Source: Ministeria vibrans ATCC 50519
Lineage: Eukaryota; Protista; Filasterea
Reading direction: 5' to 3'
Assembly: GCA_943704425.1 (NCBI GenBank)
Contig: CALSCP010000642.1
Coordinates: 48,238 to 105,549 of the forward strand
DNA length: 57,312 nucleotides
A program made the position numbers and the translations under genes. A model generated the notes under the pieces. That model ran no database searches and was not told where the DNA came from. It was given only the letters and a program-made list of their open reading frames with translations. Every line of letters starts with the position of its first letter. Position 1 is the stretch's first letter. Positions 7,801 to 52,974 of the stretch are shown piece after piece.

Positions 7801-10800
7801 ATCACATGCCCAGTTGGCCACAAGTGTCTGCTCGGAACGCAGGCCGCGTGTCCTCCGTCAACCGCCCAAGGTAGCACTGGCGCTTCGGTTTGTCCCACTT
7901 GCACCGCCGGCACCTACACGGTCAACTCGGCAAGCACTGCTTGCTCCACTTGTGAGGCTGGTTCCGCGTGTGCCGCTGGTGTCAAGACCCCATGCGCCCC
8001 TGGCTACTACTCGCTCGGAGGAGCCAGCACCTGCACCATCTGCCCCACCGGCTCTAAGTGTGTGAGCGGACACCGCACCGACTGCCCCGCGACCACGTCA
8101 CAGCCTCAGACCGGAAAGACCGTGTGCGTCACGTGCGTACCCGGTACGCACCAGCCTAACTCGGGCGAGGCCCAGTGTCTTTCATGCGACGCGGGCAGCA
8201 AGTGTGTCGGCGGTGTCATGACTGCCTGTGGCATTCACGAAATTGCCGCCACCGGCGGTCTCAGCGTGTGCACAACGTGCGCTGCGGGAACGTACAACCT
8301 GGAGCATGGCCAGTCAAGCTGCTTGCCGTGTATTATTGGATCTGAGTGCACCAACGGTGATATCAGCCAGTGTGTCGAAGGAGAATACACCGACACCGTT
8401 GGTCAATCTGACTGCGCCATCTGCGAGGCTGGAAACGTCTGCTCTGGCGGTATCAAGATACAGTGTCCACCCGGTTTCCATCAGCCGGCTGCCAACCAGA
8501 ACGAATGTCTGCCCTGTTCGGTGAAACACTACTGCGCCAACGGTTTCCAGAACATCTGCGCTCCCGGAGGCTACTCCGACGAGGAAAAGCTGAGCGTGTG
8601 CAAGGACTGCAACACCCAACACTCGTGCAACGGTGGCATCGAGACCGTCTGTCCCAACGGCGAGCACCAGCCCGCTCAGGGCCAGTCTTCCTGCCAGGAA
8701 TGCTCCATTGGCTCGTACTGTCTTAGTGGCCAAGTTTCCCAGGTGTGCCCCGACGGCCAGTACAACGAGGAGACTGGTCGCTTCGACTGCGACACTTGCC
8801 CCATGTTTTACTCGTGCAGCGGTGGCGCTCGCACAATCTGTGCCGAGGGTCTCTACACCAACACCACCGGTGTGGGCCCCAACCCTGGATGCGCTCCGTG
8901 CCTTTCCACCCACTACTGTACTTCGGGTGTGATTCGTCGTTGCCCGGCCGGTGTGTTTCAGCCTGCAACTGGCCAGAACACTTGCGAGCAGTGTCCTGTC
9001 GGTCACTACTGCGTGGACGGTGTTGAGTTCCCTTGCCCGCTCGGAAAGCAGTGCGTTGATGGATTCTTCTCCGATTGTGCTCCTGGTACCTTCCAGGATG
9101 AGCTCGCCAAGAGTGTATGCGACGATTGCGAGATTGGCCACTACTGCGTCAACGGAAACCAGACGGAGTGCCAGGACGGATCGTACCAGCACGAGGCAAA
9201 GCAGCCCGACTGCGACCAATGCGAGCCTACAAACTACTGTACCGGTGGATTTAAGACCCAGTGCGCGGCGGGCGAGTACCAGGAGCAGGCAAGCCAGTCG
9301 GCTTGTGACAGTTGCATTCCGCATTTCTCTTGCACCCAAGGTGTCAAGACTGTGTGTGCTCCCGGTCTGTACACCGATATCGGTGGCCAGTCTGTCTGCG
9401 CTGCGTGTCCCATCGGACACAAGTGTAATGGTGGCCAGCGTGTTGTCTGTGCTGAGGGACTCTACCAGGACAAGACATCACAGACTTCGTGCACTGAGTG
9501 CCCTCTGCGTCACTTCTGTACCGCCGGTATCATTGCAGAGTGTGCCTCGGGTTCGTATCAGGAGGACACCCGCCAGCCCGATTGCGACACATGCCCTGTC
9601 GGCTACGCGTGTGTGTCTGGATCGCGCACCATTTGCGCCGCGGGCACCCATCAGGTGGCCACAGGCAAGAGCACTTGCCCGACTTGTGCGGAGGGTTCCT
9701 ACTCGGTCGGCACTGGCAACACTGCATGTACCACATGCGAGGCTGGTCACTTCTGCACTGGCGGTCACAAAACCATTTGTGCCGAGGGCTACTACTCCGC
9801 CGCCGGTGCCAACGTGTGTACCGAGTGCGAGAAGGGTCACTTCTGCACCCTTGGTTTCAAGACCGAGTGTGCCGCCACGCAACACCAGCCCGCGACTGGG
9901 AAGACTACCTGTCAGACGTGCGCTGAGGGCTCGCACCAGCCCAGCACAGGCGAGGCCAACTGCATCACGTGCCCGCTCGGTCACTACTGTACCGCCGGTG
10001 TCCAGTACGAATGTGCCACACACTCGTACGCCCCCTCCGTCGGCCTCAACGCCTGTCCCATCTGCCCCGCCGGCACCTACAACCTCCTTCCCAAGCAGTC
10101 CACNNNNNNNNNNNNNNNNNNNNNNNNNNNNNNNNNNNNNNNNNNNNNNNNNNNNNNNNNNNNNNNNNNNNNNNNNNNNNNNNNNNNNNNNNNNNNNNNN
10201 NNNNNNNNNNNNNNNNNNNNNNNNNNNNNNNNNNNNNNNNNNNNNNNNNNNNNNNNNNNNNNNNNNNNNNNNNNNNNNNNNNNNNNNNNNNNNNNNNNNN
10301 NNNNNNNNNNNNNNNNNNNNNNNNNNNNNNNNNNNNNNNNNNNNNNNNNNNGCTCGTACAACATTGCTATTGAGCAGAACTCATGTCTCACTTGCAACAT
10401 TCACCACTCGTGCAACAGCGGCGACCAGACTGTGTGCCCGAACGGCAAGCACCAGCCTCAAGCTGGCCAGTCGTCGTGCATCGACTGCTCCATTGGATCG
10501 TTCTGCCTCAGCGGTGTTGACATGGAGGTGTGCGTCGAGGGTGAGTACACCGACGCCACGGGTGCAAGCGTGTGTCTTTCGTGCCCGATTTACAGTTTCT
10601 GCACCAGCGGAATCAAAAATGTGTGTGCCGAAGGTAGCTTCACGGAGCAAATCAAGGCAAACATGTGCACGACATGCCCAGCGACTTACTACTGCACCAG
10701 TGGTGTCAGCCGTGTGTGCCCCCAGGGCACCTACCAGCCCACGGCAGGCCAGAGCGCATGCATCTCGTGCGAGCCAGGCTACTGGTGCGCAGGCGGTATC

Positions 10801-13800
10801 CGTACCGTGTGCCCCACTGGCCACAGCTGCGTGAGTGGAACCCTCTCACAGTGTGTTCCCGGCTACTACTCGGCGGCTCAGGGTAACTCGGAGTGCACAG
10901 AATGTGAAGTGGGTGCCCAGTGCGTCAACGGACACAAGCAAGACTGCGCTCCCGGCTTCCATCAGCCTGCGACAGGTGCCACGNNNNNNNNNNNNNNNNN
11001 NNNNNNNNNNNNNNNNNNNNNNGGTGCTGAGGAATTCTGCCCGGCTGGTCAACACCAAGCAGGTCAGGGTCAGAGCGCTTGCGACACGTGCCTCGCCAAC
11101 CATTTCTGCACCGGCCCCGGTCCCGAAACCCGCTGCCCCGAAGGCACCTACACCAACTCGACTGGCGCTTCCGTGTGCAAAAACTGTCCCGTCGGCTACG
11201 AGTGCACCCAGGGTGCCATTGATCTGTGCGCCCCGGGCACACACCAGCCTCAGGGTTCCCAGACAACGTGCCTGACCTGCACAGCAGGCAGTTTCTGCGT
11301 CAAGGGTGTGCAGACTGTGTGTGTTGCAGGCGAGTATCAGACCAGCACGGGGGCATCTGAGTGCATCACTTGCAGCGCCGGCTGGCGCTGCAACAACGGT
11401 TTCCCCACACAGTGCCCGGCCGGTACGCACCAGCCGAATGGCGACCAGTCGACGTGCATTACCTGCCCCGAGGGTTCCTACTCGGTGGGCGTTGCCAACA
11501 CCGCTTGCCTGCCTTGCGAGGCCGGAAACTTCTGCACCGGCGGCCACAAGACTGCTTGCGCCGTCGGCTCGTGGTCGGATGCCAGCGCCAACGTGTGCCT
11601 CGTCTGCTCCATTGGCAGCTACTGTGTCGATGGTCATACCAGCGTGTGTCCGATCAAGACTAGCCAGCCGGTCGCGGGCCAGACAGTCTGCATCGATTGT
11701 GCTGCTGGCTCGTACCAGCCGTTGACGGGCCAGGCTACGTGCACCCCGTGCGCTGCTGGTTCCTTCTGCGTCGGCGGTGTCACCGCCTTGTGTCCCGCCT
11801 ACACTTACACGAGTCAGGCGTCGGCGTCCGTTTGCATTGCTTGCGCTGCAGGCACGTACAACCACGGCACCGGTGCGACCGTATGCGCCGACTGTACCTC
11901 GACCAACTTCTGCGCTGGCGGCGTCCAGGCACAGTGCCCGGNNNNNNNNNNNNNNNNNNNNNNNNNNNNNNNNNNNNNNNNNNNNNNNNNNNNNNNNNNN
12001 NNNNNNNNNNNNNNNNNNNNNNNNNNNNNNNNNNNNNNNNNNNNNNNNNNNNNNNNNNNNNNNNNNNNNNNNNNNNNNNNNNNNNNNNNNNNNNNNNNNN
12101 NNNNNNNNNNNNNNNNNNNNNNNNNNNNNNNNNNNNNNNNNNNNNNNNNNNNNNNNNNNNNNNNNNNNNNNNNNNNNNNNNNNNNNNNNNNNNNNNNNNN
12201 NNNNNNNNNNNNNNNNNNNNNNNNNNNNNNNNNNNNNNNNNNNNNNNNNNNNNNNNNNNNNNNNNNNNNNNNNNNNNNNNNNNNNNNNNNNNNNNNNNNN
12301 NNNNNNNNNNNNNNNNNNNNNNNNNNNNNNNNNNNNNNNNNNNNNNNNNNNNNNNNNNNNNNNNNNNNNNNNNNNNNNNNNNNNNNNNNNNNNNNNNNNN
12401 NNNNNNNNNNNNNNNNNNNNNNNNNNNNNNNNNNNNNNNNNNNNNNNNNNNNNNNNNNNNNNNNNNNNNNNNNNNNNNNCGGTCAGAAGTGGGCCTGTTC
12501 CGAGGGTACCTACCAGGACGAGGCGGGTCAGTCTCAGTGCGACGCATGCCCCTTCGGACACTACTGTACCGGCGGCAAGGCACTCGAATGTCCCGTGGGC
12601 CATTCGTGCACTGGCGGCGCCAAGACTCTGTGCCCCGACGGCTCGTACACCGACCAGACGGCCCAAGGCTCGTGCGTCACCTGCCCTGTCCACCACTACT
12701 GCGCCAACGGCGACAAGATTGTCTGCCCCGAGGGTCTCTACCAGGACACGACGGGTCAGATTCAGTGCAAGCCTTGTGAGGCAACGTACATGTGTAGCGC
12801 GGGTGTCCGTACTCTGTGCGCTCCGGGCTCGTTCCAGGACATTGCGACGCAATCGTCGTGCAAGCAGTGCGCTCAGTCGTACTTCTGCGTGAGCGGCGTG
12901 CAGACACGTTGCGCTGCAGGCTCGTATACACCGTCGGCTGGCGCCAGCACCTGCCTGACCTGCCCCATTGGCTCGCTCTGCGTCCTTGGCAGTGCCACCG
13001 TGTGTGCTAGCGGCAGCTACCAGGAGCAAACTGGTCAGTCTACCTGTGACACTTGCCCCGCCAACTACTCGTGCCAAGCCGGTGCCCGCACTTTGTGTGC
13101 CGCCGGTAGCTACCAGGATGCCCCTGGTGCCTCGACCTGCAAGACCTGCGCCGCTGGCTCAAGCTGCACCGCGGGTGTTCAGACTGAGTGCGCAGCCGGC
13201 GACCACCAGGAGCTGACTGGCCAGTCGACATGCAACACGTGCCCCGTGGGTCACTCGTGCACTGGCGGCCGCAAGTCACTCTGCGCTGCGGGTACCCACA
13301 CCTCGTCGGCAGGCAACAGCGCTTGTGTGGCTTGTGCCACAGCGCACTTCTGCGTGAACGGTGCTGAAACCATCTGTGCCGCGGGCGAGTACCAAGAGAA
13401 CACGGGTCAGTCGACATGCATCACTTGCCCCGCCGGCCACTCGTGCAACAATGGTATTCGCACCGTGTGCGCCTCGGGCTATGTTCAGTTCAGCACCGGC
13501 AGCGACCACTGTGTGGCGTGTGCCATTGGCTCTGTTTGCTCAGGCAACACTCAGACTGTGTGCCCCGACGGCACCCACACGGACGCGGTCGCCCAGACCA
13601 CATGCCAGACATGTGCAATTGCCAGCTTCTGCACCGGCGGAAGCCAGGTGAAGTGCCCACCGGGCTCCTACCAGGCGCGTGCAGGTCAGTCGAACTGCGA
13701 GCTGTGTGAGGCACAGAACTTCTGTCTCAACGGCGTGCAGACTGTGTGTGCCGACGGCACCTACCAGCCAGAGGCCAACCAGACAAACTGTCTGACGTGC

Positions 13801-16800
13801 CCGGCCAACAACGAGTGTACGCTCGGATCTGCGTCAGTGTGCGCCGCCGGTTCGTACCAGGAGCTCACTGGTCAGTCGGCGTGCATCACGTGTACCGACG
13901 GCTACGAGTGTGCTAACGGCGCGCGGACACAGTGTGACGAAGGCAAGTACTCGGACGCGTCGACTCAGCGTGTGTGTGCCACATGCCTCGACGGCCACTT
14001 CTGCACAGCAGGCCTCATTGCAACCTGTCCCGATGGCAGCTACACGCTCCAGGCGGGCTCGGCATCGTGCACCACCTGCCCCGTCGGCTACTCATGCGCG
14101 AGCGGTGTGGCGACTCTATGTGGTGTTGGCTCCTATGCGGCAAGCACGGGTCAAAGCTCATGCGATGAGTGTGCCGCTGGTCATGCCTGTGCCAACGGTG
14201 TGCAGACGCCGTGTGCCGTGGGAACCTACCAGATCCTCACGGGACAGGAGGAGTGCCTGGGCTGCCCCGCCGCCCACACTTGCCAGGGTGCTACTGCCAA
14301 GCCGATCATCTGCGCTGCGGGTACGCATCAGCCCGACACTGGCCGCTCCAACTGTCTCTCGTGTGACGCTGGCAACTTCTGCGTCCAGGGTGTGCAGGCG
14401 CCGTGCGCCGCTGAGTGGTACCAGGAGCAGGCAGGCCAGTCGGCATGCGTTACGTGTGCGTCCGTCACCTCAAACAAGTACTGTGACAGCGGTCGTCTTG
14501 TGGCATGCCCCTCGGGCTACACTTGCTCGAAGGGCACCAAGATTGACACAAACGAGTGTCTGTCGGCCGCAACCAACGAGTGTGCACAGCTGTGCCTTAA
14601 CAATGACGGCGGCTACTCGTGTGGCTGTCAACTGGGCTACTCAAAGATTGATAATGGCTACTCGACCGACAAGGCAGGTGGTTGTGTGCTCAGCCAGAAT
14701 GTCACCGACGTTCTTGGACCCCAGCCGACGAGCGCCGCCAACCGTGTCATTGATGCTTGGTCGCCCAAGTGGGGCGTGACGACAGACACGCCGACGGTCA
14801 CCTTCAACGCCACCGGATTTGAAGATGCCTCCGTGGTCGAGCTGTACACGTACGACGGCACTGACTCAAGCGCAAACTTTGTCGACTACAGCGTTTGCAC
14901 GTTCCTCGCGGCGACTGGACGTAAGTCTCATTTTGCATGTGAGGTTGCATCGCCCGGCTCGCGCTCGCAGACGGTCTACCTGTACATCAGCGCCGACCAG
15001 GGTGCCAGTCTTGTGGCGACTAACGAGCCGATGGAGTTCACCTTCTTCGCGCCGCCTCCCGGCATGATTGCCGCGCCCTTCTCAAGCACTGGTGGCAGCA
15101 TTGATGTTGTCTTTGGATCGGAGGCACAGGCAGTTGCGACCACCGACTTCGTGGCGGGCGATTGCAACGCCTTCTTTGACTCGGCCACCACGACCAAGCT
15201 TGGTGCTGCAAGCCAGTGCCGGTTTGTCGACTCGTTCACTCTGAGCATTCTGCTCGGCTCAACAGCCACCATCAAGCCTACGGACACGCTCGTCCTTCGC
15301 GATTTCCCTCTTGTGGGCGTCACCCGTGGCGGCGTCGAGGCATACAACCAGACATACGCAATCATTTCCAGTGGCTCGATTGCCGTGACCGCACCCGAGA
15401 CTCTGCCGTCCCCCGTGATTTCGCTGCAAGGACCTGCCCAGCTCGACGCGTGCAACGACTACACGCTCACCGCGTCTGTTCAGAGTGGTGGTGCTGGCCG
15501 CCCAGTGTCCTTCAACTGGGGCTTGGTTGAGTCGTCGGTCAACTCGTCGCTGTCCTTTGACGTCGCTAGCTTTGTCAGCACGGTGACGACCAACCCGTTG
15601 GTGGTGCCACGCCACTTGTTTGTGGACAATGCCTGGTTCCAATTCGAGGTGATTGTCAAGAACTTCTTCGACGGTCATGGTACGTCCACGTCGCCCAAGG
15701 TGACCGTCAGTGCCGACCAGCTGCCCGTCGTAACCATTAATGGCCCGGCGAGCATCTCGGCGCTGCCCACTCAAATTACAACGATTGAGGCGAGCGTTAA
15801 GACCACTTCGTGTCTTGCGGAGCAGGATGTGCCCACCTTCCAGTGGACTTCGTTGCCCGTGATCAGCGGTGGACTGGGACCATCGCAGACGACCACGTCG
15901 CTCACGCTCATGCCTGGTGTGCTCTCTGCGGGCGTTACATACACCTTTTCGCTGCAGGCCACGTCCAAGGACACCACCACGGGCGCTATTGTGCAGCCTC
16001 TGCCGGCCACGGTTGAGGTGGTTGCCGAGCACGCCTCGCTAGAGATCAAGGGAGTGACACAGGAGATTTCGGCGTTCACGTCGCAACAGATCAACCTGGC
16101 GCCTTACTGTAGCGATCCCGATGTTGGACCTAAGGGCGACAGCAATGTCGACCAGTGTGCCTACACATGGACCTGCTCATACACTGTCTTTGGCATCTCG
16201 ACGCCTTGTCCGTCGTTCACTGCCGGCTCGCGTCTGCTGTCGTTCGCCGCCGATTCGTTTGCGGATCAAGGTACCGTTGAGCTTACGGTGACTGCCACCA
16301 AGGACACACGCACCAAGAAGCACACAACGACCATTTCGCTGCTGCTTTCCGAGGAGGGTGGCGAGGCCTACCTCCCCATGGTCGCTGTTGTCGCGCAGCA
16401 ATCCGGCGTGAACCCTACGGACAACATTCGTCTGACGGCGACGCTGTATGACGACGAGGGTGCCGCACTGGACGGCTTCCGCGAGCTCAGCTGGTCCGTC
16501 GACACGGTGGTCAACTACGGTACGGCCGACCTGACTGCCGCGGGCACTGTGTGCTCGGTGAACGGCGTGACGTCGTTGCCAACACTCTGTGTTGCTGCTT
16601 CGACCTTGGGCGCCAACCGTCTTTACCGATTCCGCATGACTGACGTTGCCACAGGCTCGTACGGTTTCGTCGATGTCTATGTCAACAGCGGCCCTACTGG
16701 CGGTGCACTGACGGTGACGCCCGCGTCCGGCGGCGTTGCGATGTCCACCTTGTTCATGCTGTCGGCCGACCAGTTTGCCGATGCGCACTCGCCCATCCAG

Positions 16801-18678
16801 TACCTGATGAGCTTTGTCGATTCGACTGGCGCGGCACACGTGCTGAGCCCGCTGTCGCCGTCGGCGACATTCGAGACGATGCTTCCGGCGGGCTCGTCCA
16901 AGGACAACAAGCTGACGCTGCGCGTGACCGCCGTGGATGCGTTTGGAGCCTCGTCGAGTGTGGACACAACCATCACACTGCTGCCGTGGGAGTCACCGGC
17001 GCCCACTGCAGCCGAGATTGACGCGGAGCTGTGCGACCAGATGGGCGTGGCCGTCAGTGTTCTTGACCCGGCGCAGACTGCAAGTTACGTTTCGGGCATG
17101 TACGGCGTGCTGCAGACGGTGAAGGAAGAGACGGCCTCATGCACGTCGTGCCGGGCGCAGGTGATCAATGAAATTGGCGAGCGCATTGGCCTTGTCTTCA
17201 GCACCATGGCGGGAACCATTGAAGAGCTCCAGCAAGTTGCGGACATGACCGAGCTTGCTCTTTCCATGGGACAGAGCTGCCAGTCGGAAAAGTTGACGAA
17301 CATGGAGTTCTGGTGCAAGAGCATGCAGCTGACGCTTAACGCTTACATGCTCCCGCTGTCGTCGTACTACACGCAAACGGGTGCACTACCCACAAGTCAG
17401 GTTGATCCGGAGACGTCTCAGCAGCTTGTGAACATTTTGAACCTGCAGACGTCACTTGGATGCGAGCAGAACATGGAGGCGATCACTGGCCAGATTGCGC
17501 TGATTTCGTCGTTCCTCATGGCGCCCGGTGACGCGCCTCTGTCGTACGTGAGCGGCAACATGCGCGTGTCGTTCAGCAAAGTCAACCTCATGGTCGACTC
17601 GAACAACGGCACGGTGGGCGGTGTTATGTGTGCTTCGGGCTCAACCTGCCCGTCGGTGACCTTTGACCGTGACCAGCTCGTTGATATTATTGGTGATCTC
17701 CAGAACGTCCTTATTGTGGCCAACATGTACGAGACGGCGCCTTTCTCGGCTGAGTCGTGGGCGGCCATTGCCACGTGCGGCAACTCGCAGACGGTCGAAG
17801 TGCAGCTGATTGACGCTGCCGTGATGGAGGTGGAAGCTCTTGAGATCTCGGGCATGACGCAGCCCGCGGAGATTGTCATTCCGTACCCGAGCAACTGCGC
17901 CTCGACGGTGATTATTGCGGCCAAGTGCGAGTGGTACAACGAGACGTCGAAGACGTGGGTCGAGTCAGGTGTGCAAGGCGTCGTTGTGAACGGCGTCACG
18001 ACATGCGAGACTTCGCACTTGACTGCCTTTCAGATGGTCACCACCTACGACGTTGACGACGGCGCTCAGGGCTCCGGCTCAGGCAGTTCGTCGTCGTCGT
18101 CGTCGATGGTTCTGTACGGCGCCATTGCCGGTGTGGCCATATTCGCCGTGGTCATCATTGCGCTCATTGCGCTGTTTGTGCATCGCAACAGCGAGAAGTA
18201 CAACCGCGGCACAATCTTTAATGTGATGAGCAAGACGGAGAACGAGACGGAGAAGAAGAAGGGATTCAACATGTACATCCTGCAGGAGCACGGTCTGGAG
18301 GTGCCGACGACCGAGAGCGACCGCACCGACGGTCTCTGGGAGAACCAGAAGTCTGCCGAGGACGAGATGTACGGGTCGATCGAGGACAGCGTCTCGCATG
18401 GTGGTGGACTTGCCAAGCAGCCCAGCATGAATTCGCAGTCGTCCTTCTGGATCAACCCGATGCTTCTGCTCGACGGCGCGACCACTGAGGAGTCGACTGC
18501 CGACGGCGCCATGATTCTTGACGACTCGTCGGCCGGCGGGTTCTCGTCGACGGCGAGTGCTGCTGCGCGTCGTCAGAGCATCATTACGTCGCTTGCAAGC
18601 GCCAACATGCTGACAGACCGCGCTCTGCAGCCCATGAACTCAATGATCGAGGACCCCGACACGGAGTTTATGTGTTGA
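1824..18678 (+). CDS. Giant type I membrane protein (~5,540 aa nominal, including N gaps): signal peptide, poly-Arg, GCC2/GCC3 (ephrin-receptor-like) Cys repeats, cbEGF, PKD/REJ-like region, GAIN/GPS, single TM
   Basis: Exons 1824-2174, 2353-2506, 2570-18678, joined by GT-AG introns of phase 0 and 1 that keep the frame. Signal peptide MTNIRLLLVVLATLLSAVVAA. About 12 kb of CxxCxxGxY/CxxGxxC repeats. cbEGF DTNEC...CLNNDGGYSCGC at ~14545. REJ-like VNSGPTGGALTVTP...FADAHSPIQY. GPS CEWY...W...G...CETSHLTAF at 17926-18030. TM at 18106-18180. Confidence 0.9.
6587..7067. repeat. 112-bp exact direct duplication (6587-6698 = 6956-7067) flanking an N gap
   Basis: Identical sequence on both sides of gap 6699-6955, offset 369 nt. 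Confidence 0.9.
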
Positions 18679-40769: not shown

Positions 40770-42253
40770 TCACTCTGCCTCAGTGAGATACTGCAGACGG
40801 GCAGTGACCGCCTCGTATGCTGCATCCATTGAACTGCCCTTGGACCGGCGTGTCACCAAATTTGCAATACGATCAGCATCCGCCGATGACAACACATCAT
40901 CCTCCTCCTGGGTCCACAGTGGCTCTACACACAACACAACAGTCATTCTCTCCCTCAATCATTCACACTCATTCATTCGTTCGCGGATAGCCACACGCAC
41001 AAAAAAAAATGAAGTAAAAGAACATAACAATCATAATAAAACATAAGTTCTATACACCACTCTCTCGTTTTTGCTCACGTTGAAGAGACGCCTCTTGTCC
41101 ACGAAGCACACGCTGGACAATGTCGACGCGACCCGACGCGCGGTTGAGCAAGTAGAACACCAACGCACCCAGATTCACATTGAGCGACTCCAGACCGCGC
41201 GTTTCGTCCTCAATAAGCTGCAACACTGCGTCCATGCCTTCTGCGTCCGAATCCATCCCCGCCCCCTCCTCCTCTTCCATTCTTTTGTCTGCCTCCTTCT
41301 TCTTCTCCTTTTCTTTGGCTGGTCCCTTTCCCTTCCTGTCGTGTCGCGGCTTCTTGGCCGCTGACACCTCACCCTGCGTCTCTTCGTCGTCCTGGGTCTC
41401 TCGCTCACGCTTCACCGCTTTCACCGCTTTGACCTTTGCTGCTACCGTTGGGTTTGACGTTGCTGCTGCTGCTGCTACTGCTGTTGTGGTGGTGGTGGTA
41501 GTTGTGGGCAGCACTCTTTTCTTCCGTGGAGACACTCTGATCTTGGACTGACTCGGGTCCTCCTCCACTTCGTCTTCCTTCTCCTCTTCGTCATCATCAT
41601 CGCCGTCCTCCCGTGTTACTTTCTCGACTACCCCAGCCAGTCCTAATGCCTCTGCATCCTTAGCACCGGGCTTTGCCATAAGGGCCGCCTGCTTGGCCTT
41701 CTTCAGCGCACGAATGTCTGCAACACACGCAAAAAAAAATCAACCAGTGCATAAAAAAGAGTGTGCGTACAATTATCGGATTTAAGGACATGATCACGAA
41801 AACGTCGGCGAATGGTGTCAACACTGCGACCGTTTGGATTATACTAGAGCAATACCGTGCGGTGAGGATAAGTAATAGGTGGCGCACTCTCATTCTTTTG
41901 TACCTTGTCGTTCTTCTCGATGGCCATCCACAGCTTTTGACTTGTATCGGGCAGATGAAGATTCATGCATCGCCACTCGGTGAGCTTGTCATCTTCCTCG
42001 ACAGTATACTCTCTTCGAATGAAAAACGAGAAAACAAAAACGTTAGACATCATCAGGATCAACAACAACGTACAATCTCGAACGCTTTTTGGGAGTTTCG
42101 GGAGCTTTGACGACATAGCGCTCCAAGTCGGCAAGCTTGTTGTGTAGACAAGAGTCTCGAAGAAAGGCCAGCTGGTAAAGAGGCCGAGTGCTGGGGAACC
42201 ACTGGAAGAGAGAAAGAGAGAGGGAGAAAGAAAGGAGGGAGAAAGAAACAAAG

Positions 42254-42339
<86 letters not shown>

Positions 42340-42349
42340 TNNNNNNNAC

Positions 42350-42384
<35 letters not shown>

Positions 42385-45300
42385 ATTGTCAGAATCAGGA
42401 AAAAGCGACAGCGCTGCTTCCCCTCTCCACGCACACCCACACACACACACCCACCCACACACCTTGCGGAAGTCCTCCTTCTCGATGGCGTCGTTAAACA
42501 CCTTTTCAATCTGAAGCTTAAACTCAGAGTCAGCCACGACCAGCAGGGGAGCCACGCACAGCAAGGCAGCCACAACCACGATCCTCATTCTCACGGTACG
42601 CAACAAAAACAAATAGTGTAAGAGTAATTTTATTTGTTTTATTTGTATGGTATTAAAATACCGCAGGAAAATTAATCGAAAGGTAAATGATTCTATAATC
42701 ACTCACTTCACAGCCTCTCACTCATGCGGCTGCTACGACTTGCACTGCTGCTTCTTACAGCTTCCTCACTCTGTTCTGCTGCCAAGTAAGGCACCACGCG
42801 TCACAGAACGAGCGCACAGCAGCTCTGACTCGCTTCCGTCTGTTATAGTCGAGTGTCGATCCGAGAAGCAGACGACCGCTCGCAATCCGTCCATTTTGTG
42901 GGCACAGACGGCGAGGCGGTGACTGTGGTGGCGTATGGGGCGGTGGATATTGCGGAGGGGCCGCTCCTGGTGGGCGGAGAGGCGTTGAGCAATATCACGA
43001 AGGGAGTGGAAACACTTCGGACGGCGCTGGACGCTCTTGCGCTCTCCGTTGCGGGTCTGCAGCCCTCGACGGTGTGCAGTCTTGCGTGTGGCCCCCATGG
43101 GTCGTGCGTCGTCGACATAGACGCGTCGCAGCAGTGCATATGCGACGCTTTTTACGCAGGTGAGGTGTGCGACCAGCTCGTGTGTCCGCAGTGCCTGAAC
43201 GGCGCCGCATGCACGCTGGCCTCGTCCGCCCTGCCGACCTGCCAGTGCTCCGACGCGTACACGGGGGTCTTCTGCGAGACGCCTCTTGCGTGTGCCTCCA
43301 ATCCGTGTGTCGCCGGCACTTGTCAGGAGGTGTCACAGGCGGCGGGTCCCAACTCGTTTGCTTGCCTGTGCACTTCCACGACATCCGGTGTCCTTTGCCA
43401 GCACCCGTGTGCTGCAGGATTCGTCAAGACGGCTACTCAGGAGACGGTGGCCGCCTCGTGTGTACCTTGTCCCAAAGGCACTTTTCAAATGGACAACACT
43501 TGTGCTCCCTGCGAAATGGGTATTCGTATGAATCCGGTGTGCGAGTCTGCTGATTCTTTCTCTTTCTTGCAGGACATTACGCCAATGAGACAGGCTTGAC
43601 GGCATGCACTGCGTGTCCTCTGGGTTCGATTGCCGCTGCGCCTGAGGCCCACACGTGCTCACAGTGTCCCATTGGAGCCATCGCGGCACAAACGGGCCTC
43701 TCTGTGTGCACTCCCTGTCCTCTGGGCGACACCACATTTGCTGTTGGTGCATCTGTGTGTGTTGTGCATCCGTGTACATCGCGTCCGTGCTACGACGGGA
43801 GCACGTGCAGTACGAACAGCAACGGGTCCTCCTTTGCCTGCGATTGTGCGCCGGGTCATACAGGCAACCTCTGTGAAAGCGCTCTCGTTTGCTACTCGTC
43901 ACCCTGCCAAAACGATGGCACCTGCCGCGAGCCAGGATCTTCTTTGGCCCAAAGTGGGCTACTAACGGTCCTCTGTGATTGTTTACCTGGCTTCACAGGA
44001 AGTCACTGCGAGACGACCATTGTACCTTGTGATTCGAACCCTTGCCAGAATGGCGGTACCTGCGCGCCCACCTCTTCTTCTATTGCCTGTACCTGTCCCG
44101 CAACGCACACCGGCTTTTTTTGTGACACTCTTCTTGTATGTGCCTCGTCGCCCTGTCAGAACGGTGGCATTTGCCATGAACCAGGAACCTTTACGGGACA
44201 AGGTGATGTGACGCCGAACGACAGTTTCAAATGTGAGTGTCCCTCCAACTTGACCGGGCGCCTCTGTGAGACTCTTATTCATCCTTGCCATTCAAATCCC
44301 TGTGAGAACGGCGGTACATGCGTGGCTGACACGCCGCTTTCATTCACGTGTACCTGTCCAGTGACACATGTTGGCACTCTCTGTGGCACCACTCTTGAGT
44401 GTTTCTCATCGCCTTGTCAAAACGGCGGCCAGTGTCACGAGCCGGGATCACTTGATGTTCAAGGAAGTCCCAACAACGCACTTGTATGTGTTTGCACCAC
44501 CGATTACACCGGTGATGTGTGTGACTCGGAGGCACACACGTGTGTGACGAACCCCTGCTTGAATGGTGCCACATGCATCTCTACGACGCCCACGACGCAC
44601 ACGTGTATGTGTCCGGCGACTCACACGGGCACTCTCTGTGACATCCTTCTCCACTGCCACTCGTTGCCCTGTCAGAATGGCGGCCTCTGTGAAGAACCAG
44701 GATCCGCTGGGAGTGTCATTGGTCCCTCGTGCGTGTGTATGGCCGACTTCACTGGCAAAGTCTGTGAGACGATTATTTCTGACTGTGAGTCGAGTCCCTG
44801 CCTTCACGGCGGGACATGCAAAGTCACCAACTCGAATCTAGGCCACTTGTGCATGTGTGCGGCGGGATTCACCGGTCCCCAGTGCGACTCAAATGTCGAC
44901 GAGTGTGCTTCGTCGCCGTGTCGACATGGTGGCACGTGCACTGATACTACGGACGCCCATAGCTGTGCGTGTGTGAATGGATTCACGGGCACCCTCTGTG
45001 AGACAAACATTGACGATTGCCACCTGCCAAATGCGTGTCTCAATGGTGGTATTTGTCGGGACGGCATTGCTTCCAAGATATGTGTGTGTCTGGCCGGCTA
45101 CACTGGTCCGCAATGTGAACAGGACATTGACGAGTGTCTGTCGTCGCCCTGTGTCAATGGTGGCCATTGTATTGACGCACCCAGCAATTTTACCTGTGAC
45201 TGTCACAATGGTTTTACGGGCACTCTGTGCCAGACTAGTGTTGAAGAGTGTGCATCGAGTCCGTGCTTTAATGGCGGCTCGTGTCATGACCGAGTGGGTG

Positions 45301-47309
45301 CTTTCAAGTGCGACTGCGTGACAGGGTACACGGGAGTGAGATGCCAGCACAATCTCAATGACTGTACGTCATCGCCGTGTCTGAATGGTGCTGTGTGCAA
45401 CGACGGACTCGACTCGTTTGAGTGTGTGTGTGCCATTGGCTACACCGGCACACACTGTGAGTCGACCATTGATGAGTGTGCGTCCAATCCCTGTCAGAAC
45501 TCTGGTAGTTGTGCCAATAATGGCCATTTGTCGTTTACCTGCACGTGTCTTTCGATCTACACGGGCACGCACTGCGAGACGCTGATAAATGGGTGTGCGT
45601 CGAGTCCCTGTATCAATGGCGGCACCTGTAAGTTCCTCTCCTCTTTTCCATTCTTCACTTGCCGCTGTCCAGATGGCTTTCAAGGGACCCGCTGCGAGAT
45701 GAATGCCCCTGTCGAGTGTGTTTCACAGCCGTGTCTTTTTGGCGGCACCTGCACAGCCACGCCAAGCTCTAGCTTCCTCTGTACGTGCCTTAATGGCTAT
45801 ACGGGTACCGACTGCGGCACAGCGGACGCTTGCGCCTCTAGTCCCTGTCACGGAGGACAAACCTGTCAACCCAAACCTCACGTTTTGGATGGTTCTTATC
45901 AGTGTTGTGGCGATACGAGTGCGTGCTTACTGGATCCGACTGTATAGCAGTAGTACAATAAAATAATAATACGTCATGTTTTATTATTATTATTATTATT
46001 CGTTGTATAATAATAATAATAAAAGTATCTTTTATTCTTATTTGCATTCGTATTTGTACTGCATCTCTACACTAACAACCTGACAATGCAACTGTCCCTG
46101 TCGCGTTCGGTCTGAATGTTCGCTAACGACAGACCGGAGTGGTGCGTTCAATGCCGTCCTTGAACGTCTGCATTGCTCGTTGATGAGATCCCCCAATCCT
46201 AAATCCCCTATTTTCTGAATTCCTTTGCCGCCCGGCGCCCGCTGAGGTGCGGAAGCAAAAATCGTCACAAAAACGATTTTTCATTTCGATTAATTTGTGC
46301 AGTCGAACTGATTCATAATAATAATCGTCATTTCCTTTGCTTTCTTTCTTTCTTATACTACTATGCCCCACAGACACGCACGCACTGCCCTACTGGGTCT
46401 TACGGCAGTTTCAGTGTGTGTGCTGCTGTATGTTGGGTCAAGACCGGGTCTGTGGGCCGTAGAAGACGCTGTTTTGCCGGCGGTTGATGTGCGACAGGAC
46501 ACATCGGGACGTGTCGCCCCAACAGCGGAACCAGCGCCACGTCGTCCGCCGGCGCGCGCTCCATATGTCGAACTACCTCCCGGCTATGACGAATGGGTCG
46601 AGCACGAGGAGCAGAACGCGACAGCGTTGCCAGCACGCGCTCCCAAAGTGTTTGAGCAGCGCAAGAAGTGGGTTGCGACGTGCGACCGAATCAAGCACAA
46701 ACACCCACAAGAGCGCTTTCTTCTGCCCATCCTGCCCTTTGGTCCGTCAAATCAATACATGGGCTTTATCGAGTCGGTGAGAGATAGACAGAGAGACGCA
46801 CACGCACGCGGATTGTGAGCACGAATGACACTGATTGGCATTGTGTTTCCTCCATTGTGCCTCGCAGGTGTTGATCGCACGCGCACTTGGGCGCACGCTC
46901 ATTCTCCCTGCATTTCGTGAGCATTACCTTGAAAGCGCGCGCCACAATCGCGTTCACAAGCCGCATTTTCATGATTTTGAGTCGATATTTGAGCGACAAC
47001 ACATTGAAGCGACGAGCGGAATACGGACCATTCTGCTCGACGAGTACCGCCAGCAGCACCCCGAGCACACCATCGACCTTATACTACACTTTCGTGCCGA
47101 GTTTGAGACATCACAACGGCTCTTTGAGGTCGGAACGGGTCTCAATTGGACTGTTCGTCACTCGATGCGCATCGAAAAACATCCCATTGACTTCCACTCG
47201 CCGGAAACCATCAAAGCTGAACTTGGAGAGTGCTCGGACCGCCTCATTGCACTTGGTGCCATATTCCTGAATTTGCAGTATCTCCCAATCATCACTCCGA
47301 AACAAGTAA

Positions 47310-47384
<75 letters not shown>

Positions 47385-48599
47385 AAGAAAGTGATAGAGA
47401 GAGAGAGAGAAACAAATGCTAGTTAGTGGGAGTGAAATTGGCATTAGAAGGGACGTGTGTTACTGTGGGGGTGGGGGTGGTGCGGATGGCTGTGCTGCTG
47501 GGGCTGTAGCAGTAGCAATAGTAGCGGCGGTGGTGGTGGTTGGCTGTACAGTGGCTCCCGTCACTTGCCTATTCACATGGTTCAACATAACAACACACTC
47601 TGAGTAATAATTCTCTCTCCCTCTCGATTACTGTGCAATAATGTGTTTTCGGGCTCTGCGATCTAGTCTGCGGTTGTACATATCAAACAGAGTCAACTTC
47701 AATTCTCGTTCAATATTCCGTCGTCGCTCACTCTCCTTCTCATCCTCCTCCTAAAAACACACAAACAGACAATCAACGCCATCAGTGAGAGCCATAGGAA
47801 GAGAGAAAGAAGAGAAAGAAGGGAGGGAGGGAGGGAGAGAAAAGCAGGAGAAAAAACTTGAATCTTGACCTGTAGGGTAAAGTGAGTGTCGTGGTCGGCA
47901 AACACAATATCTTTGACAAGTGACTCTGCGTGTTCGTCATACTCCACTGCGTAATCATCGCGCAGGGCCAGTTGACCCGCAACGGACACATTTACTGCCA
48001 TCTGATAAATACAAAACACACACACACAGAGGGAGAAAGTAAGAAAGAAGAGAGAGAGAGAGAGAGAGAGAACAATGTGATAGAGAGAACAATGTGATAG
48101 AGAGAACAAAGTGATAGTGAAAACAAAGAGAGAAAGCAAAGTGATAGAGAGAACAAAGTGATAGAACAAAGTGATAGAGAGAACAATGCGATAGAACAAA
48201 GTGATAGAGAGATGGAATGAGCGCGAGCAATGGCAATCAGACGTGTGTGTCGCCGCTACCTTATCCTCGGGGGCCAGTCGAATATCAAACTCTTGGTTGC
48301 TGCTCACTAGAACGCCTCCTCCGGCCTAGCGCAGGCCATTGGTAGCGAAACGGCCCATTGGCGAGGTTGAGACGAAAACGAGTCTTGGGCGCGTTCTCGC
48401 GATTACCTCAACCAATTGACGCGCTTCGGCCTTGTCGTGGCCTCGCTCAATGCCAAACACCAGGGGCTTGCCGTCGACCACAAATAGATCCTACGCCAAG
48501 CCATATGAGAAAAACACAATTGTGCTGCAGTCGAGGCACAACCTTGCGAACGCGCGCCAAATCCAACGCGTCTGCCGAAAGAGTAGCCTTAGTGCTCAT
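40770..48599 (-). CDS. RAP1: Telomeric RAP1/TERF2IP homolog (BRCT-Myb-RCT, ~436 aa), interrupted by an apparent 6,058-nt intron
   Basis: Exons 48599-48543, 48490-48407, 48325-48260, then 42201-42074, 42012-41904, 41843-41771, 41717-41079, 40924-40770; phases are consistent. BRCT: DLFVVDGKPLVF...LVEAGGGVLV...LAPEDK|WFPSTRPLYQLAFLRDSCLHNKLADLERY. Myb: RLEYTVEEDD...QKLWMAIE...GRSVDTIRRRFRDHVL. RCT: LNRASGRVD...PLWTQEEDDVL...AVTARLQYL. Confidence 0.8.
42259..42336. repeat. (GA)n microsatellite next to an N gap and a poly-A run
   Basis: Directly visible; preceded by AACAAAGTGATA. Confidence 0.95.
42463..42588 (-). CDS. Orphan first exon encoding a signal-peptide-like leader (MRIVVVAALLCVAPLLVVADSEFKLQIEKVFNDAIEKEDFRK)
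   Basis: ATG, hydrophobic N-terminus, 42 codons, ending at the phase-0 donor AAG|gtgtgt. It is divergent from the EGF gene, 135 bp away. No matching downstream exons are in the window other than those of RAP1. Confidence 0.55.
42724..45947 (+). CDS. Secreted multi-EGF protein (~1,035 aa; ~21 EGF-like repeats, Notch/fibropellin-like, plus a few GCC2/3 repeats)
   Basis: Exons 42724-42785, 42849-43519, 43573-45947. Signal peptide MRLLRLALLLLTASSLCSA, then a short amphipathic helix, then tandem CxSxPCxNGGTC...CxCxxGFTGxxC repeats, several of cbEGF type (NVDEC, DIDEC). No TM segment. Confidence 0.9.
46363..47305 (+). CDS. O-fucosyltransferase-like (GT-B) type II membrane protein, 5' half only
   Basis: Exons 46363-46776 and 46868-47305. 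N-terminal TM anchor, Pro-rich stem, motif FGPSNQYMGFIESVLIARALGRTLILPAF. Ends at donor CAA|gtaaga with no acceptor or C-terminal nucleotide-sugar-binding (HxR) half found. Confidence 0.7.
47314..47410. repeat. (GA)n microsatellite containing AAAGTGATAGAGA
   Basis: Directly visible; it separates the FucT and ADA2 fragments. Confidence 0.95.
47460..48001 (-). CDS. ADA2: ADA2/TADA2-like transcriptional adaptor, internal exons only
   Basis: Exons 48001-47870, 47750-47632, 47568-47464 (or to TAA at 47460). AGQLALRDDYAVEYDEHAESLVKDIVF and ERELKLTLFDMYNRRLDRR match the conserved ADA2 core (GYMPxRxxFExEYDNxAE...ELKL...YNxRL). ZZ, SANT and SWIRM domains are absent from the window. Confidence 0.75.
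48050..48212. repeat. Degenerate minisatellite of GAACAA(A/T)GTGATAGAGA units
   Basis: About eight imperfect 15-19-nt units following a (GA)n run. Confidence 0.9.
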
Positions 48600-51700: not shown

Positions 51701-52710
51701 GAGTGTACGGATGGAGCTATGGGGGCTATTTGTCGCTGTTGGCGCTGGCACAGCGACCCGATGTATTCAAAGTAGGTTTTATCTCCCTCCTATACATTCG
51801 CTGTCAGTCTCTCTCTCTACCACTTTGTTTCTTTCTCCCTCCCTCCCTCTTCTCTCTCTCTTTATCACTTTGTTTCTTTCTCCCTCCCTCCTCTCTCTCT
51901 CTCTACCACTTTGTTTCTTTCTCCCTCCCTCCCTCCTCTCTCTCTCTTTATCACTTTGTTTCTTTCTCCCTCCCTCCTCTCTCTCTCTCTACCACTTTGT
52001 TTCTTTCTCCCTCCCTCCCTCCTCTCTCTCTATCACTTTGTTTCTTTCTCCCTCCCTCCTCTCTCTCTCTCTACCACTTTGTTTCTTTCTCCCTCCCTCC
52101 CTCCTCTCTCTCTCTTTATCACTTTGTTTCTTTCTCCCTCCCTCCTCTCTCTCTCTCTCTACCACTTTGTTTCTTTCTCCCTCCCTCCCTCCTCTCTCTN
52201 NNNNNNNNTCCCCCCCTTCCCTTGATCATGCAGAATGTTTTATTTACTCTTGTTGTTGTGTGGTGTATCTCAACAGGTGGCTGTGTCGGGTGCGCCTGTG
52301 ACGGACTGGCTCGCTTACGACACAGGTTACACAGAGCGCTTTCTGGGGATTCCCGCTGACAACGAAGTCGCGTACATGCAAGGCAGTGTCCTCACGGCCG
52401 CGCGCTCCTTTCCCGACAGGTTTGAATACACAAACGACCTAACGTCTCTTGAACTGACACTCTATCGTTGTCATACGATGCATTTAGTGAGGACCGACTG
52501 CTGATTGTGCACGGTCTCCAAGACGAAAACGTGCACTTTACGCACACTGCAGTGCTGATTGATGCGCTGGTGGGTGCCGGCAAGCCCTATGTGCTCAATG
52601 CGTACCCGTGCGAGCGCCATGGCATCCGCAGCATACGTGCCGCAGACCACCAGGAAACCCAGCTCGTCCGCTTCTTGTACCGTGCCCTTGCAGCTAATTC
52701 GCCATCTTAG
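48785..52710 (+). CDS. Dipeptidyl peptidase 8/9-like serine peptidase (S9B)
   Basis: Exons 48785-48801, 48915-49039, 49163-49455, 49532-49638, 49727-49794, 49910-51051, 51131-51349, 51421-51585, 51643-51771, 52277-52419, 52488-52710. Motifs [49 protein letters not shown] (Ser), [18 protein letters not shown] (Asp), ERHGIR (His). No signal peptide or TM. Confidence 0.93.
51808..52199. repeat. Intronic pyrimidine-rich minisatellite, unit ~CTCTCTA(C/T)CACTTTGTTTCTTTCTCCCTCCCTC
   Basis: About nine ~40-45-nt units in DPP intron 9, ending at an N gap. Confidence 0.92.
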
Positions 52711-52974
52711 AGAACGTTCTCTGAGAGTGCAATTTAATTGGAGGGAGAAGAGCGATTTTATATGCTAGATTGGAGGGGGGGGGAGAGCGATTTTAACGAG
52801 CTGCCGATATTACTTGTTGTAAAGGATTAATCATATATTTTTAATCATGAGGAAAAAAATAATGCTATTGGTCTCGGTGTCAGCTTCTTGTGAACTATAG
52901 ATACAAATCTCTCTATCACTTTGCTTCTCTCTCTCTCCTCCCTTCCTCCTCTCTCAAACACACGTCTCCCATAT

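Follow-up and report, generated by a model that had tools for sequence, protein, structure and literature searches.

Genes nested within introns are well known in animals, with examples within the introns of NF1 in human and of dunce in Drosophila. In ciliates, IESs and the pieces of scrambled genes are flanked by pointers, short direct repeats that are specific to each junction. A third kind of system is technical: repeat-mediated chimeric joins and misplaced small contigs arise in short-read scaffolds from de Bruijn graph hubs at microsatellites and from gap-closing errors. Here we analyze a locus of Ministeria vibrans at which a RAP1-like gene appears divided by a 6-kb block of other genes and gene fragments. 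The window, the whole stretch of DNA that was analyzed, comprises 57,312 nt of contig C642.

The locus resembles a nested gene in that a complete gene, encoding EGF repeats, lies between the exons of another gene. However, nested genes are complete inner genes within a continuous host intron, whereas only one of the four inner units here is complete and the other three are fragments that break off in introns of their own, an N gap interrupts the block, missing exons of one unit (ADA2) lie on contig C1893, and introns elsewhere in this genome are short. As in ciliates, the block has a short direct repeat at either end, and its removal together with one repeat copy restores the gene. In contrast to a junction-specific pointer, the motif forms tandem arrays and has about 4,000 copies (18 in the window; genome-wide, 3,987 exact ones of the core); removal restores an intron rather than a coding junction, and we have no evidence for two forms of the genome. 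Repeat-mediated chimeric joins match the locus in each of the following respects, with no observed difference: all junctions lie in simple repeats or an N gap, the inserts are small and their flanks correctly ordered, a partner fragment lies at the repeat end of another contig, and the assembly has many contigs of 110 to 300 bp and repeats at contig ends. We estimate a probability of roughly 80% that the 6-kb block is an assembly artefact and not a genuine genome feature.

Results

The RAP1-like gene has its exons 1 to 3 (48599-48543, 48490-48407, and 48325-48260) and its exon 4 (42201-42074) on the minus strand, with GT-AG borders. Each of the first three exons has a length divisible by 3 nt, and the splice from 48260 to 42201 joins in phase 0, with 6,058 nt between the end of exon 3 and the start of exon 4. 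Coordinates and splice borders thus agree with the original prediction of two halves on one strand, colinear, in phase 0, and this far apart. Exons 1 to 3 (48260-48599, minus strand) would encode the N-terminal half of a BRCT domain and are present in a single copy in the genome. The 5′ part of intron 3 (48073-48259, minus strand) consists of 47 nt of unique sequence followed by tandem units of the TCTCTATCACTTTGTT minisatellite, whose period here is 13 to 17 nt. The remainder of the gene (40770-42206, minus strand), also single copy, runs from the 3′ end of intron 3 (the motif, a pyrimidine tract, and AG at 42203-42202) through exon 4, the putative C-terminal half of the BRCT, a Myb-like exon (42012-41904), an acidic/basic exon within the open reading frame 41679-41050, and an RCT-like last exon within the open reading frame 40958-40770, all on the minus strand.

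The exons suggest a domain order similar to that of RAP1/TERF2IP, a telomere protein with BRCT, Myb, and RCT domains, and the last exon gave a weak match to Rap1_C (14.9 bits, E = 0.028, profile positions 47 to 74; cut-off, 24.2 bits). Unlike RAP1/TERF2IP, however, no exon here reaches a family threshold singly. The exons are short queries (19 to 42 amino acids), and the Pfam, PDB, and ESM Atlas searches were run exon by exon. Searched singly, the putative BRCT exons (28, 22, and 42 amino acids) had no Pfam match at E ≤ 10, no match in PDB, and no meaningful match in the ESM Atlas, and the Myb-like exon (36 amino acids) had no Pfam match. Profile scans of the genome did not pick up the locus with BRCT_2 and gave no match anywhere with Myb_Rap1 (PF08914) or Rap1_C. 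A presumed similarity to human RAP1/TERF2IP at the level of motifs, in the GGG turn and in the helix at the C-terminal end of the BRCT, is treated here as a lead.

The outer flanks of the gene are intact, with order and orientation kept: the C-terminal half is contiguous with a ZNF598-like gene, and the N-terminal half adjoins a divergent S9-peptidase-like gene that starts near 49198. The ZNF598-like open reading frame had no match at E ≤ 1e-10 in the protein collection searched for an independent version of the locus; it did not match even itself there, so the collection lacks this genome. No small redundant contig with a contiguous version of the RAP1-like intron was found in the assembly.

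The block is composed of two pieces, each cut within introns at (CT)n/(AG)n tracts. The first, of 0.64 kb, is a middle fragment of a gene for the SAGA adaptor ADA2. The second, of 4.9 kb, carries the whole EGF gene together with the starts of two others, the first exon of a signal-peptide gene and an N-terminal portion of an O-fucosyltransferase-like gene. Exon reading and Pfam matches bear out the predicted inventory of one complete EGF gene and three gene fragments, although the fucosyltransferase-like one is supported only weakly. The EGF gene (42725-45947, plus strand) encodes a secreted protein and has its own ATG, a signal exon (42725-42787), introns, and a stop codon at 45947; 18 stretches match Pfam EGF profiles (E = 1e-84). 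The O-fucosyltransferase-like fragment (46363-47305, plus strand) has an ATG at 46363, a TM-like start, two exons, and a GT donor at 47306. It resembles the Pfam O-FucT profile (GDP-fucose protein O-fucosyltransferase) weakly (19.2 bits against a cut-off of 31.5), over profile positions 22 to 85 of 326 only. A search of its exon against a library of 1.84 billion proteins returned no relatives except one spurious repeat protein (P0001), and tblastn detected no paralogues; fucosyltransferase genes on contigs C498 and C372 were considered as paralogues and rejected as unrelated at the sequence level. The signal-peptide-like first exon (42463-42588, minus strand; 42 amino acids, GT donor) belongs to a gene without family assignment, and the intron that follows it enters T28 and then the N gap.

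All three internal boundaries of the block fall in (CT)n/(AG)n tracts. The first junction, J1 (42207-42377), consists of (AG)66, a 7-N gap at exactly the predicted position (42341-42347), and A28. Because J1 is a scaffold gap flanked by simple repeats, continuity across it has no sequence support. The second junction, J2 (47315-47410), is formed by (AG)48 and a single motif copy. Two introns of opposite orientation, that of ADA2 on the minus strand and that of the fucosyltransferase-like gene on the plus strand, collide head-on at this point, and neither gene is followed by its downstream exons. The third, J3 (48053-48072), is a short (CT)n tract at which the RAP1-like intron gives way to the 3′ part of an ADA2 intron, and (CT)n and minisatellite together span 48051-48212 on this side of the block. 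Of the four genes in the block, all but the EGF gene break off within an intron. None of these fragments shows decay: exons are open, splice sites are canonical and intact, and composition matches the surroundings. As had been noted, two same-strand exons of the block, one of ADA2 and the signal-peptide exon, are phase-compatible with the RAP1-like gene. Other introns in the region measure tens to a few hundred nucleotides.

The 18-bp direct repeat occurs exactly at the two predicted positions, 42247-42264 and 48195-48212, and the arithmetic also holds: excision of one copy with the intervening DNA leaves 110 nt (47 + 18 + 45). Its proposed role as a specific boundary of the block does not survive a count of its copies. 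With up to two mismatches, 18 copies are present in the window, including one at 47385 inside the block, six in the array at 48071-48212, and nine in an intron of the neighboring peptidase gene. Across the 29.7-Mb genome, the 15-nt core CTCTATCACTTTGTT has 3,987 exact copies, compared with 1 for the reversed control. The 18-mer is a common intron minisatellite and no specific pointer. A role of the 18-mer itself as a recombination or mis-join site was also considered and rejected: unit structure differs between arrays (13 to 17 nt in the RAP1-like intron versus about 41 nt on C1893), and only (CT)n tracts are common to all junctions. The mis-join sites are likely to be the (CT)n tracts rather than the 18-mer.

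The ADA2 gene is split between the window and C1893. The middle fragment (47411-48052, minus strand), single copy in the genome, begins in the 3′ portion of an intron, runs through exon A (48001-47870) and exon B (47750-47632), and breaks off in the first part of the intron that follows. Exons A and B match TADA2A-like_3rd with 32.5 and 29.3 bits, both above the cut-off of 27 bits, at consecutive profile positions (2 to 35 and 33 to 60), and encode the third helical domain of ADA2. The N-terminal exons are located outside the window, at the very end of C1893 (21,410 bp), as six GT-AG exons totaling 540 nt. They encode an ADA2-type ZZ zinc finger (ZZ_ADA2; 32.8 bits when the genome was scanned and 32.2 bits when the exon was searched, against a cut-off of 27.5) and a SANT-like region split over three short exons, of which one (20 amino acids) matches Myb_DNA-binding below the cut-off (17.8 bits, E = 0.0037). 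The last of these exons ends in phase 0 at C1893:21075, in frame with exon A, which starts in phase 0 and extends the domain order ZZ, SANT, TADA2A-like_3rd. The final 335 nt of C1893 are intron: the same minisatellite and (CT)33, then a CT-rich tail to the contig end. The tail resembles window positions 48041-48052 (with overlap to 48070), a weak, low-complexity similarity.

Since exon A is in phase, in domain order, and single copy, C1893 would have to join into the middle of C642. The location of the in-frame N-terminal exons at the end of C1893 indicates that at least J3, the join of the RAP1-like and ADA2 introns at about 48053-48072, is probably chimeric. Profile scans of the window and C1893 found no C-terminal SWIRM domain of ADA2, and the SWIRM scan of the genome yielded two matches and no others, one SMARCC-like on C2457 and one weak on C386. 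The SWIRM region is probably missing from the assembly or divided among short exons.

The assembly is a draft made up of short-read debris and scaffolds. Among sampled contigs, 9 of 20 were 110 to 300 bp long. Among 31 ends of contigs of at least 1 kb, about 13 were simple repeats, 6 of them of the CT/AG type, against a background rate of 0.9% of 60-nt tiles. The start of C642 itself consists of (AG)n and the motif.

Discussion

The original prediction had offered contigs mis-ordered through a shared repeat as one of three readings of the locus and had rated it at least as likely as the others. This reading gains support from the division of ADA2 at the same repeat and from the presence of a simple repeat or N gap at every block boundary. 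Intron 3 of the RAP1-like gene would then be a few hundred nucleotides long and consist of minisatellite and (CT)n, like other introns here. Scaffolding or gap closing may have threaded two small contigs (0.64 and 4.9 kb) between two true neighbors, the halves of the RAP1-like gene. The contigs involved would all share (CT)n/minisatellite sequence at their ends, and this sequence would serve the assembly graph as a hub. We infer the assembler error itself from the assembled sequence, and so too its exact step, the breakpoints within the repeats, and the true intron length.

Some observations count against misassembly. J2 and J3 contain no N and are continuous assembled sequence. In addition, searches of the rest of the assembly recovered neither the remainders of the fucosyltransferase-like and signal-peptide genes nor, in genome scans with SWIRM and TADA2A-like_3rd, the ADA2 C terminus, which leaves a single documented end among the predicted partners. 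The same observations, except for the ADA2 C terminus, would favor a genuine 6-kb intron in the RAP1-like gene, as would the colinear flanks and the animal precedent for genes within introns. Such an intron would hold a nested EGF gene and dead fragments of the ADA2, fucosyltransferase-like, and signal-peptide genes that had arrived through ectopic recombination or through duplication at (CT)n tracts, with the ADA2 fragment being a second, identical copy collapsed by the assembler. We regard this as unlikely. Dead fragments are hard to reconcile with the undecayed exons, splice sites, and composition described above; the ADA2 middle is present only once, and the N-terminal part of the gene breaks off where its contig ends, within the same repeat. 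Three independent truncations, each exactly at simple repeats, would also be needed, in an intron far outside the size range of its neighbors.

Structural heterozygosity or a strain rearrangement, in which one haplotype or subclone carries the insert in intron 3 and the other has the short intron, appears very unlikely. Microsatellites can mediate rearrangements, which is the sole point in favor of this alternative and nothing direct. However, no alternative-haplotype contig with either half of the RAP1-like gene was found in the assembly, and ADA2 would remain broken.

Truly interleaved or scrambled genes, rejoined by repeat-guided excision, trans-splicing, or exon skipping with the minisatellite or (CT)n as guide, would fit the colinear RAP1-like pieces and the phase-compatible exons but are hardly credible, because partners cannot be singled out by a guide that exists in about 4,000 identical copies, the ADA2 partner sits where an assembly break would leave it, at the end of a contig, the repeat also occurs in introns of uninterrupted genes, and we know of no machinery or precedent outside ciliates and a few other lineages. 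The copy number removes the main prop of both excision and RNA-level rejoining as first proposed, since the 18-bp repeat points to no specific site. Equally remote is a genome-wide version in which segments of many genes would be interspersed at (CT)n/minisatellite tracts, with RAP1, ADA2, and the fucosyltransferase-like gene as local cases, and reunited at the DNA or RNA level with participation of the minisatellite; if true, against the odds, it would be a gene organization unprecedented outside ciliates.

With misassembly as the preferred reading, gene models of this draft can be expected to contain false chimeras, such as the N-terminal half of the RAP1-like gene fused to ADA2 or a signal peptide fused to its C-terminal half. 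False split or interleaved genes are to be expected wherever introns carry (CT)n or the minisatellite, and similar findings in this assembly call for caution. An intron of the neighboring peptidase gene is filled by the minisatellite and a 9-N gap, and the gene is colinear across it; such repeats are thus ordinary intron content and ordinary gap sites.

The RAP1-like gene and the block that divides it

The exons of the candidate BRCT-Myb-RCT gene lie where the original prediction had placed them. Exons 1 to 3 (48599-48543, 48490-48407, and 48325-48260; minus strand) have canonical borders, and each length is a multiple of 3 nt. Exon 4 (42201-42074), preceded by a pyrimidine tract and AG, is on the same strand; the exon ends at 48260 and 42201, separated by 6,058 nt, are compatible in phase. 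Three more exons lie 3′ of exon 4: a Myb-like one, a long acidic/basic one, and the last exon. Searched singly against Pfam, the last exon gave a weak Rap1_C match that fell under the cut-off (E = 0.028). The split exons may encode a BRCT domain, a reading based on motif likeness to human RAP1; the short RAP1-like exons (19 to 42 aa each), searched singly, had no match in Pfam, PDB sequences, or the ESM Atlas, and genome scans with BRCT_2, Myb_Rap1, and Rap1_C did not recover the locus. One contig begins with (CCCTAA)n (L041; C1780:1-300 of genome G000), and the organism therefore seems to have TTAGGG-type telomeres, which would fit with the presence of a RAP1/TERF2IP-like gene.

The block between exons 3 and 4 consists of two pieces, and the unique DNA in each is single copy in the genome. 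On the minus strand, piece 1 (47411-48052) carries two ADA2 exons, preceded by the 3′ end of one intron and followed by the beginning of another; both exons match consecutive parts of the Pfam TADA2A-like_3rd domain over the cut-off. Piece 2 (42378-47314) carries a signal-peptide-like first exon (42588-42463, minus strand) whose intron enters T28 and an N gap; a multi-exon EGF gene on the plus strand, complete from its ATG (42725) to its stop (45947); and an O-FucT-like gene represented by its two initial exons (46363-47305, plus strand), with a donor followed by 9 nt and then (AG)48. This inventory of one intact gene and three gene fragments had also been read correctly in the original prediction. 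The boundaries comprise J1 (42207-42377; (AG)66, N7, and A28), J2 (47315-47410; (AG)48), and J3 (48053-48072; (CT)n plus minisatellite). The window has seven N runs in all, among them the gap in J1 (42341-42347). At J2 the ADA2 and FucT-like introns collide head-on, and downstream exons are missing from both genes. Two open frames traverse the junction regions on the minus strand, one (42043-42702) connecting the signal-peptide exon to RAP1 exon 4 across (CT)n and the N gap, and the other (47699-48307) connecting RAP1 exon 3 to ADA2 exon A across the minisatellite; chimeric protein calls by gene predictors are likely at both.

The presumed boundary repeat is an abundant minisatellite

The block had been thought to be bounded by an 18-bp direct repeat, which proved to be generic. 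The 18-mer is exact at 42247-42264 and at 48195, but when as many as two mismatches are allowed, the window has 18 copies versus 0.01 expected, including one copy inside the block (47385-47402), a tandem array of six (48071-48212), nine copies with an 86-nt period (51808-52199), and one copy at 52908-52925. Exact copies of the 15-nt core, CTCTATCACTTTGTT, number 3,987 (1,929 + 2,058) in the 29.7-Mb genome, versus a single copy of the reversed core used as a control. The 18-mer is thus part of an abundant minisatellite, and a repeat with approximately 4,000 copies can mark no specific excision.

Arrays of the minisatellite have units of 13 to 17, about 30, 41, and 86 nt, with (CT)n adjoining; it was additionally located at L017 (2225-2400). 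In the RAP1-like, ADA2, and S9 peptidase genes, it invariably lies toward the 3′ splice site of an intron, with the pyrimidine-rich strand in sense orientation. It may be a mobile intronic element, a splicing element, or a polypyrimidine tract that has expanded. In the neighboring S9-peptidase-like gene, the array at 51808-52199 takes up an intron and is interrupted by a gap of 9 N. The peptidase exons are colinear on both sides; such arrays thus belong to the usual makeup of introns and are usual places for gaps.

ADA2 is divided between two contigs

ADA2 is a conserved SAGA subunit. A real block would imply a broken ADA2, whereas an artifact would leave the rest of the gene at an assembly break. 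In a genome scan with the Pfam profile ZZ_ADA2, the top match fell on a separate contig of the same assembly (C1893; 21,410 bp), about 870 nt from its end. The final 1.1 kb of C1893 has six GT-AG exons (540 nt in total) that include a SANT-like part and a ZZ finger (32.2 bits versus a cut-off of 27.5). The last of these exons stops in phase 0 at C1893:21075, and the remaining 335 nt are intron, with copies of the minisatellite followed by (CT)33 and the contig end. Exon A in the window starts in phase 0 after minisatellite, (CT)n, and AG, and it extends the domain order (ZZ, SANT, TADA2A-like_3rd) begun on C1893. Together, the phase-0 ends, the domain order, and the shared repeat show that ADA2 falls into two assembly units, with the break precisely at the repeat. 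The overlap of the C1893 end with 48041-48070 is low complexity and carries little weight.

The assembled order of the contig containing the window (C642) could be correct only if C1893 joined the middle of C642. J3, at least, is chimeric. J2 is almost certainly chimeric as well, since no downstream ADA2 exons are found there, and J1 is a scaffold gap with no sequence evidence of continuity.

A misassembly best explains the block

We conclude that the block is best explained as a misassembly and not as a real feature (probability of about 0.8). Misordering of contigs through a shared repeat was one reading in the original prediction, and it is favored here by the split of ADA2 at the repeat and by boundaries that are repeats or an N gap. 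The contig carrying RAP1-C, which continues into a ZNF598-like gene (an ORF with no match in the protein collection), and the contig carrying RAP1-N, which continues into the peptidase gene, would be true neighbors in the correct order, separated by a (CT)n/minisatellite intron too repetitive for short reads to cross. We infer that scaffolding or gap closing took a path via the hub that (CT)n forms in the assembly graph and so brought in two small contigs likewise ending in (CT)n, the exact breakpoints being part of this reconstruction. Without both pieces, the RAP1 intron would comprise about 190 nt (48259-48073), (CT)n, and 63 nt (42264-42202), restoring it to a probable few hundred nucleotides, within the range of other introns. 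Two negative results weaken the case for misassembly: no redundant contig with a contiguous RAP1 intron is present in the assembly, and in genome searches the ADA2 C terminus was not located elsewhere in the assembly, nor were the FucT C terminus and the rest of the signal-peptide gene.

The foremost alternative, a genuine intron of 6 kb that houses a nested EGF gene together with dead fragments of other genes, is improbable: it demands three truncations exactly at simple repeats, fragments without decay, and an identical second copy of the ADA2 piece that has collapsed. We consider a true rearrangement or heterozygosity of the strain less probable again. Genes that are truly interleaved and are brought together by trans-splicing or repeat-guided excision would be remarkable but are the least credible, given a supposed guide repeat with thousands of identical copies and an ADA2 partner located where an assembly break predicts. 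As a misassembly, the block is a warning for gene structures in this assembly.

State of the assembly and the EGF-repeat family

In an evenly spaced sample of 20 contigs, 9 have lengths of just 110 to 300 bp, typical short-read debris. Among sampled contigs of at least 1 kb, about 13 of 31 ends are simple repeats, six of them CT/AG-type, against a background of 0.9% for 60-nt tiles of the window; (AG)n plus the minisatellite motif also stands at the start of C642 itself. Five N gaps (31 to 538 nt; 4667-12479) lie within a highly repetitive cysteine-rich coding region of the window (approximately 3000-17000), where the assembled repeat number and order are unreliable. Two different contigs share an identical first 60 nt (L029, C100:1-300; L067, C31:1-300), a pattern suggestive of a mobile element or dispersed repeat at the ends of contigs.

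The O-FucT-like fragment, which adjoins the EGF-repeat gene, matches Pfam O-FucT under the threshold; a search of its exon against 1.84 billion representative proteins returned one spurious repeat protein and essentially no relatives. Many tiny contigs (C560, C2548, C2051, C1033, C2632, C1089, and others) are EGF-repeat coding sequence 65 to 90% identical to the EGF gene in the block, and this gene family is large and poorly assembled.
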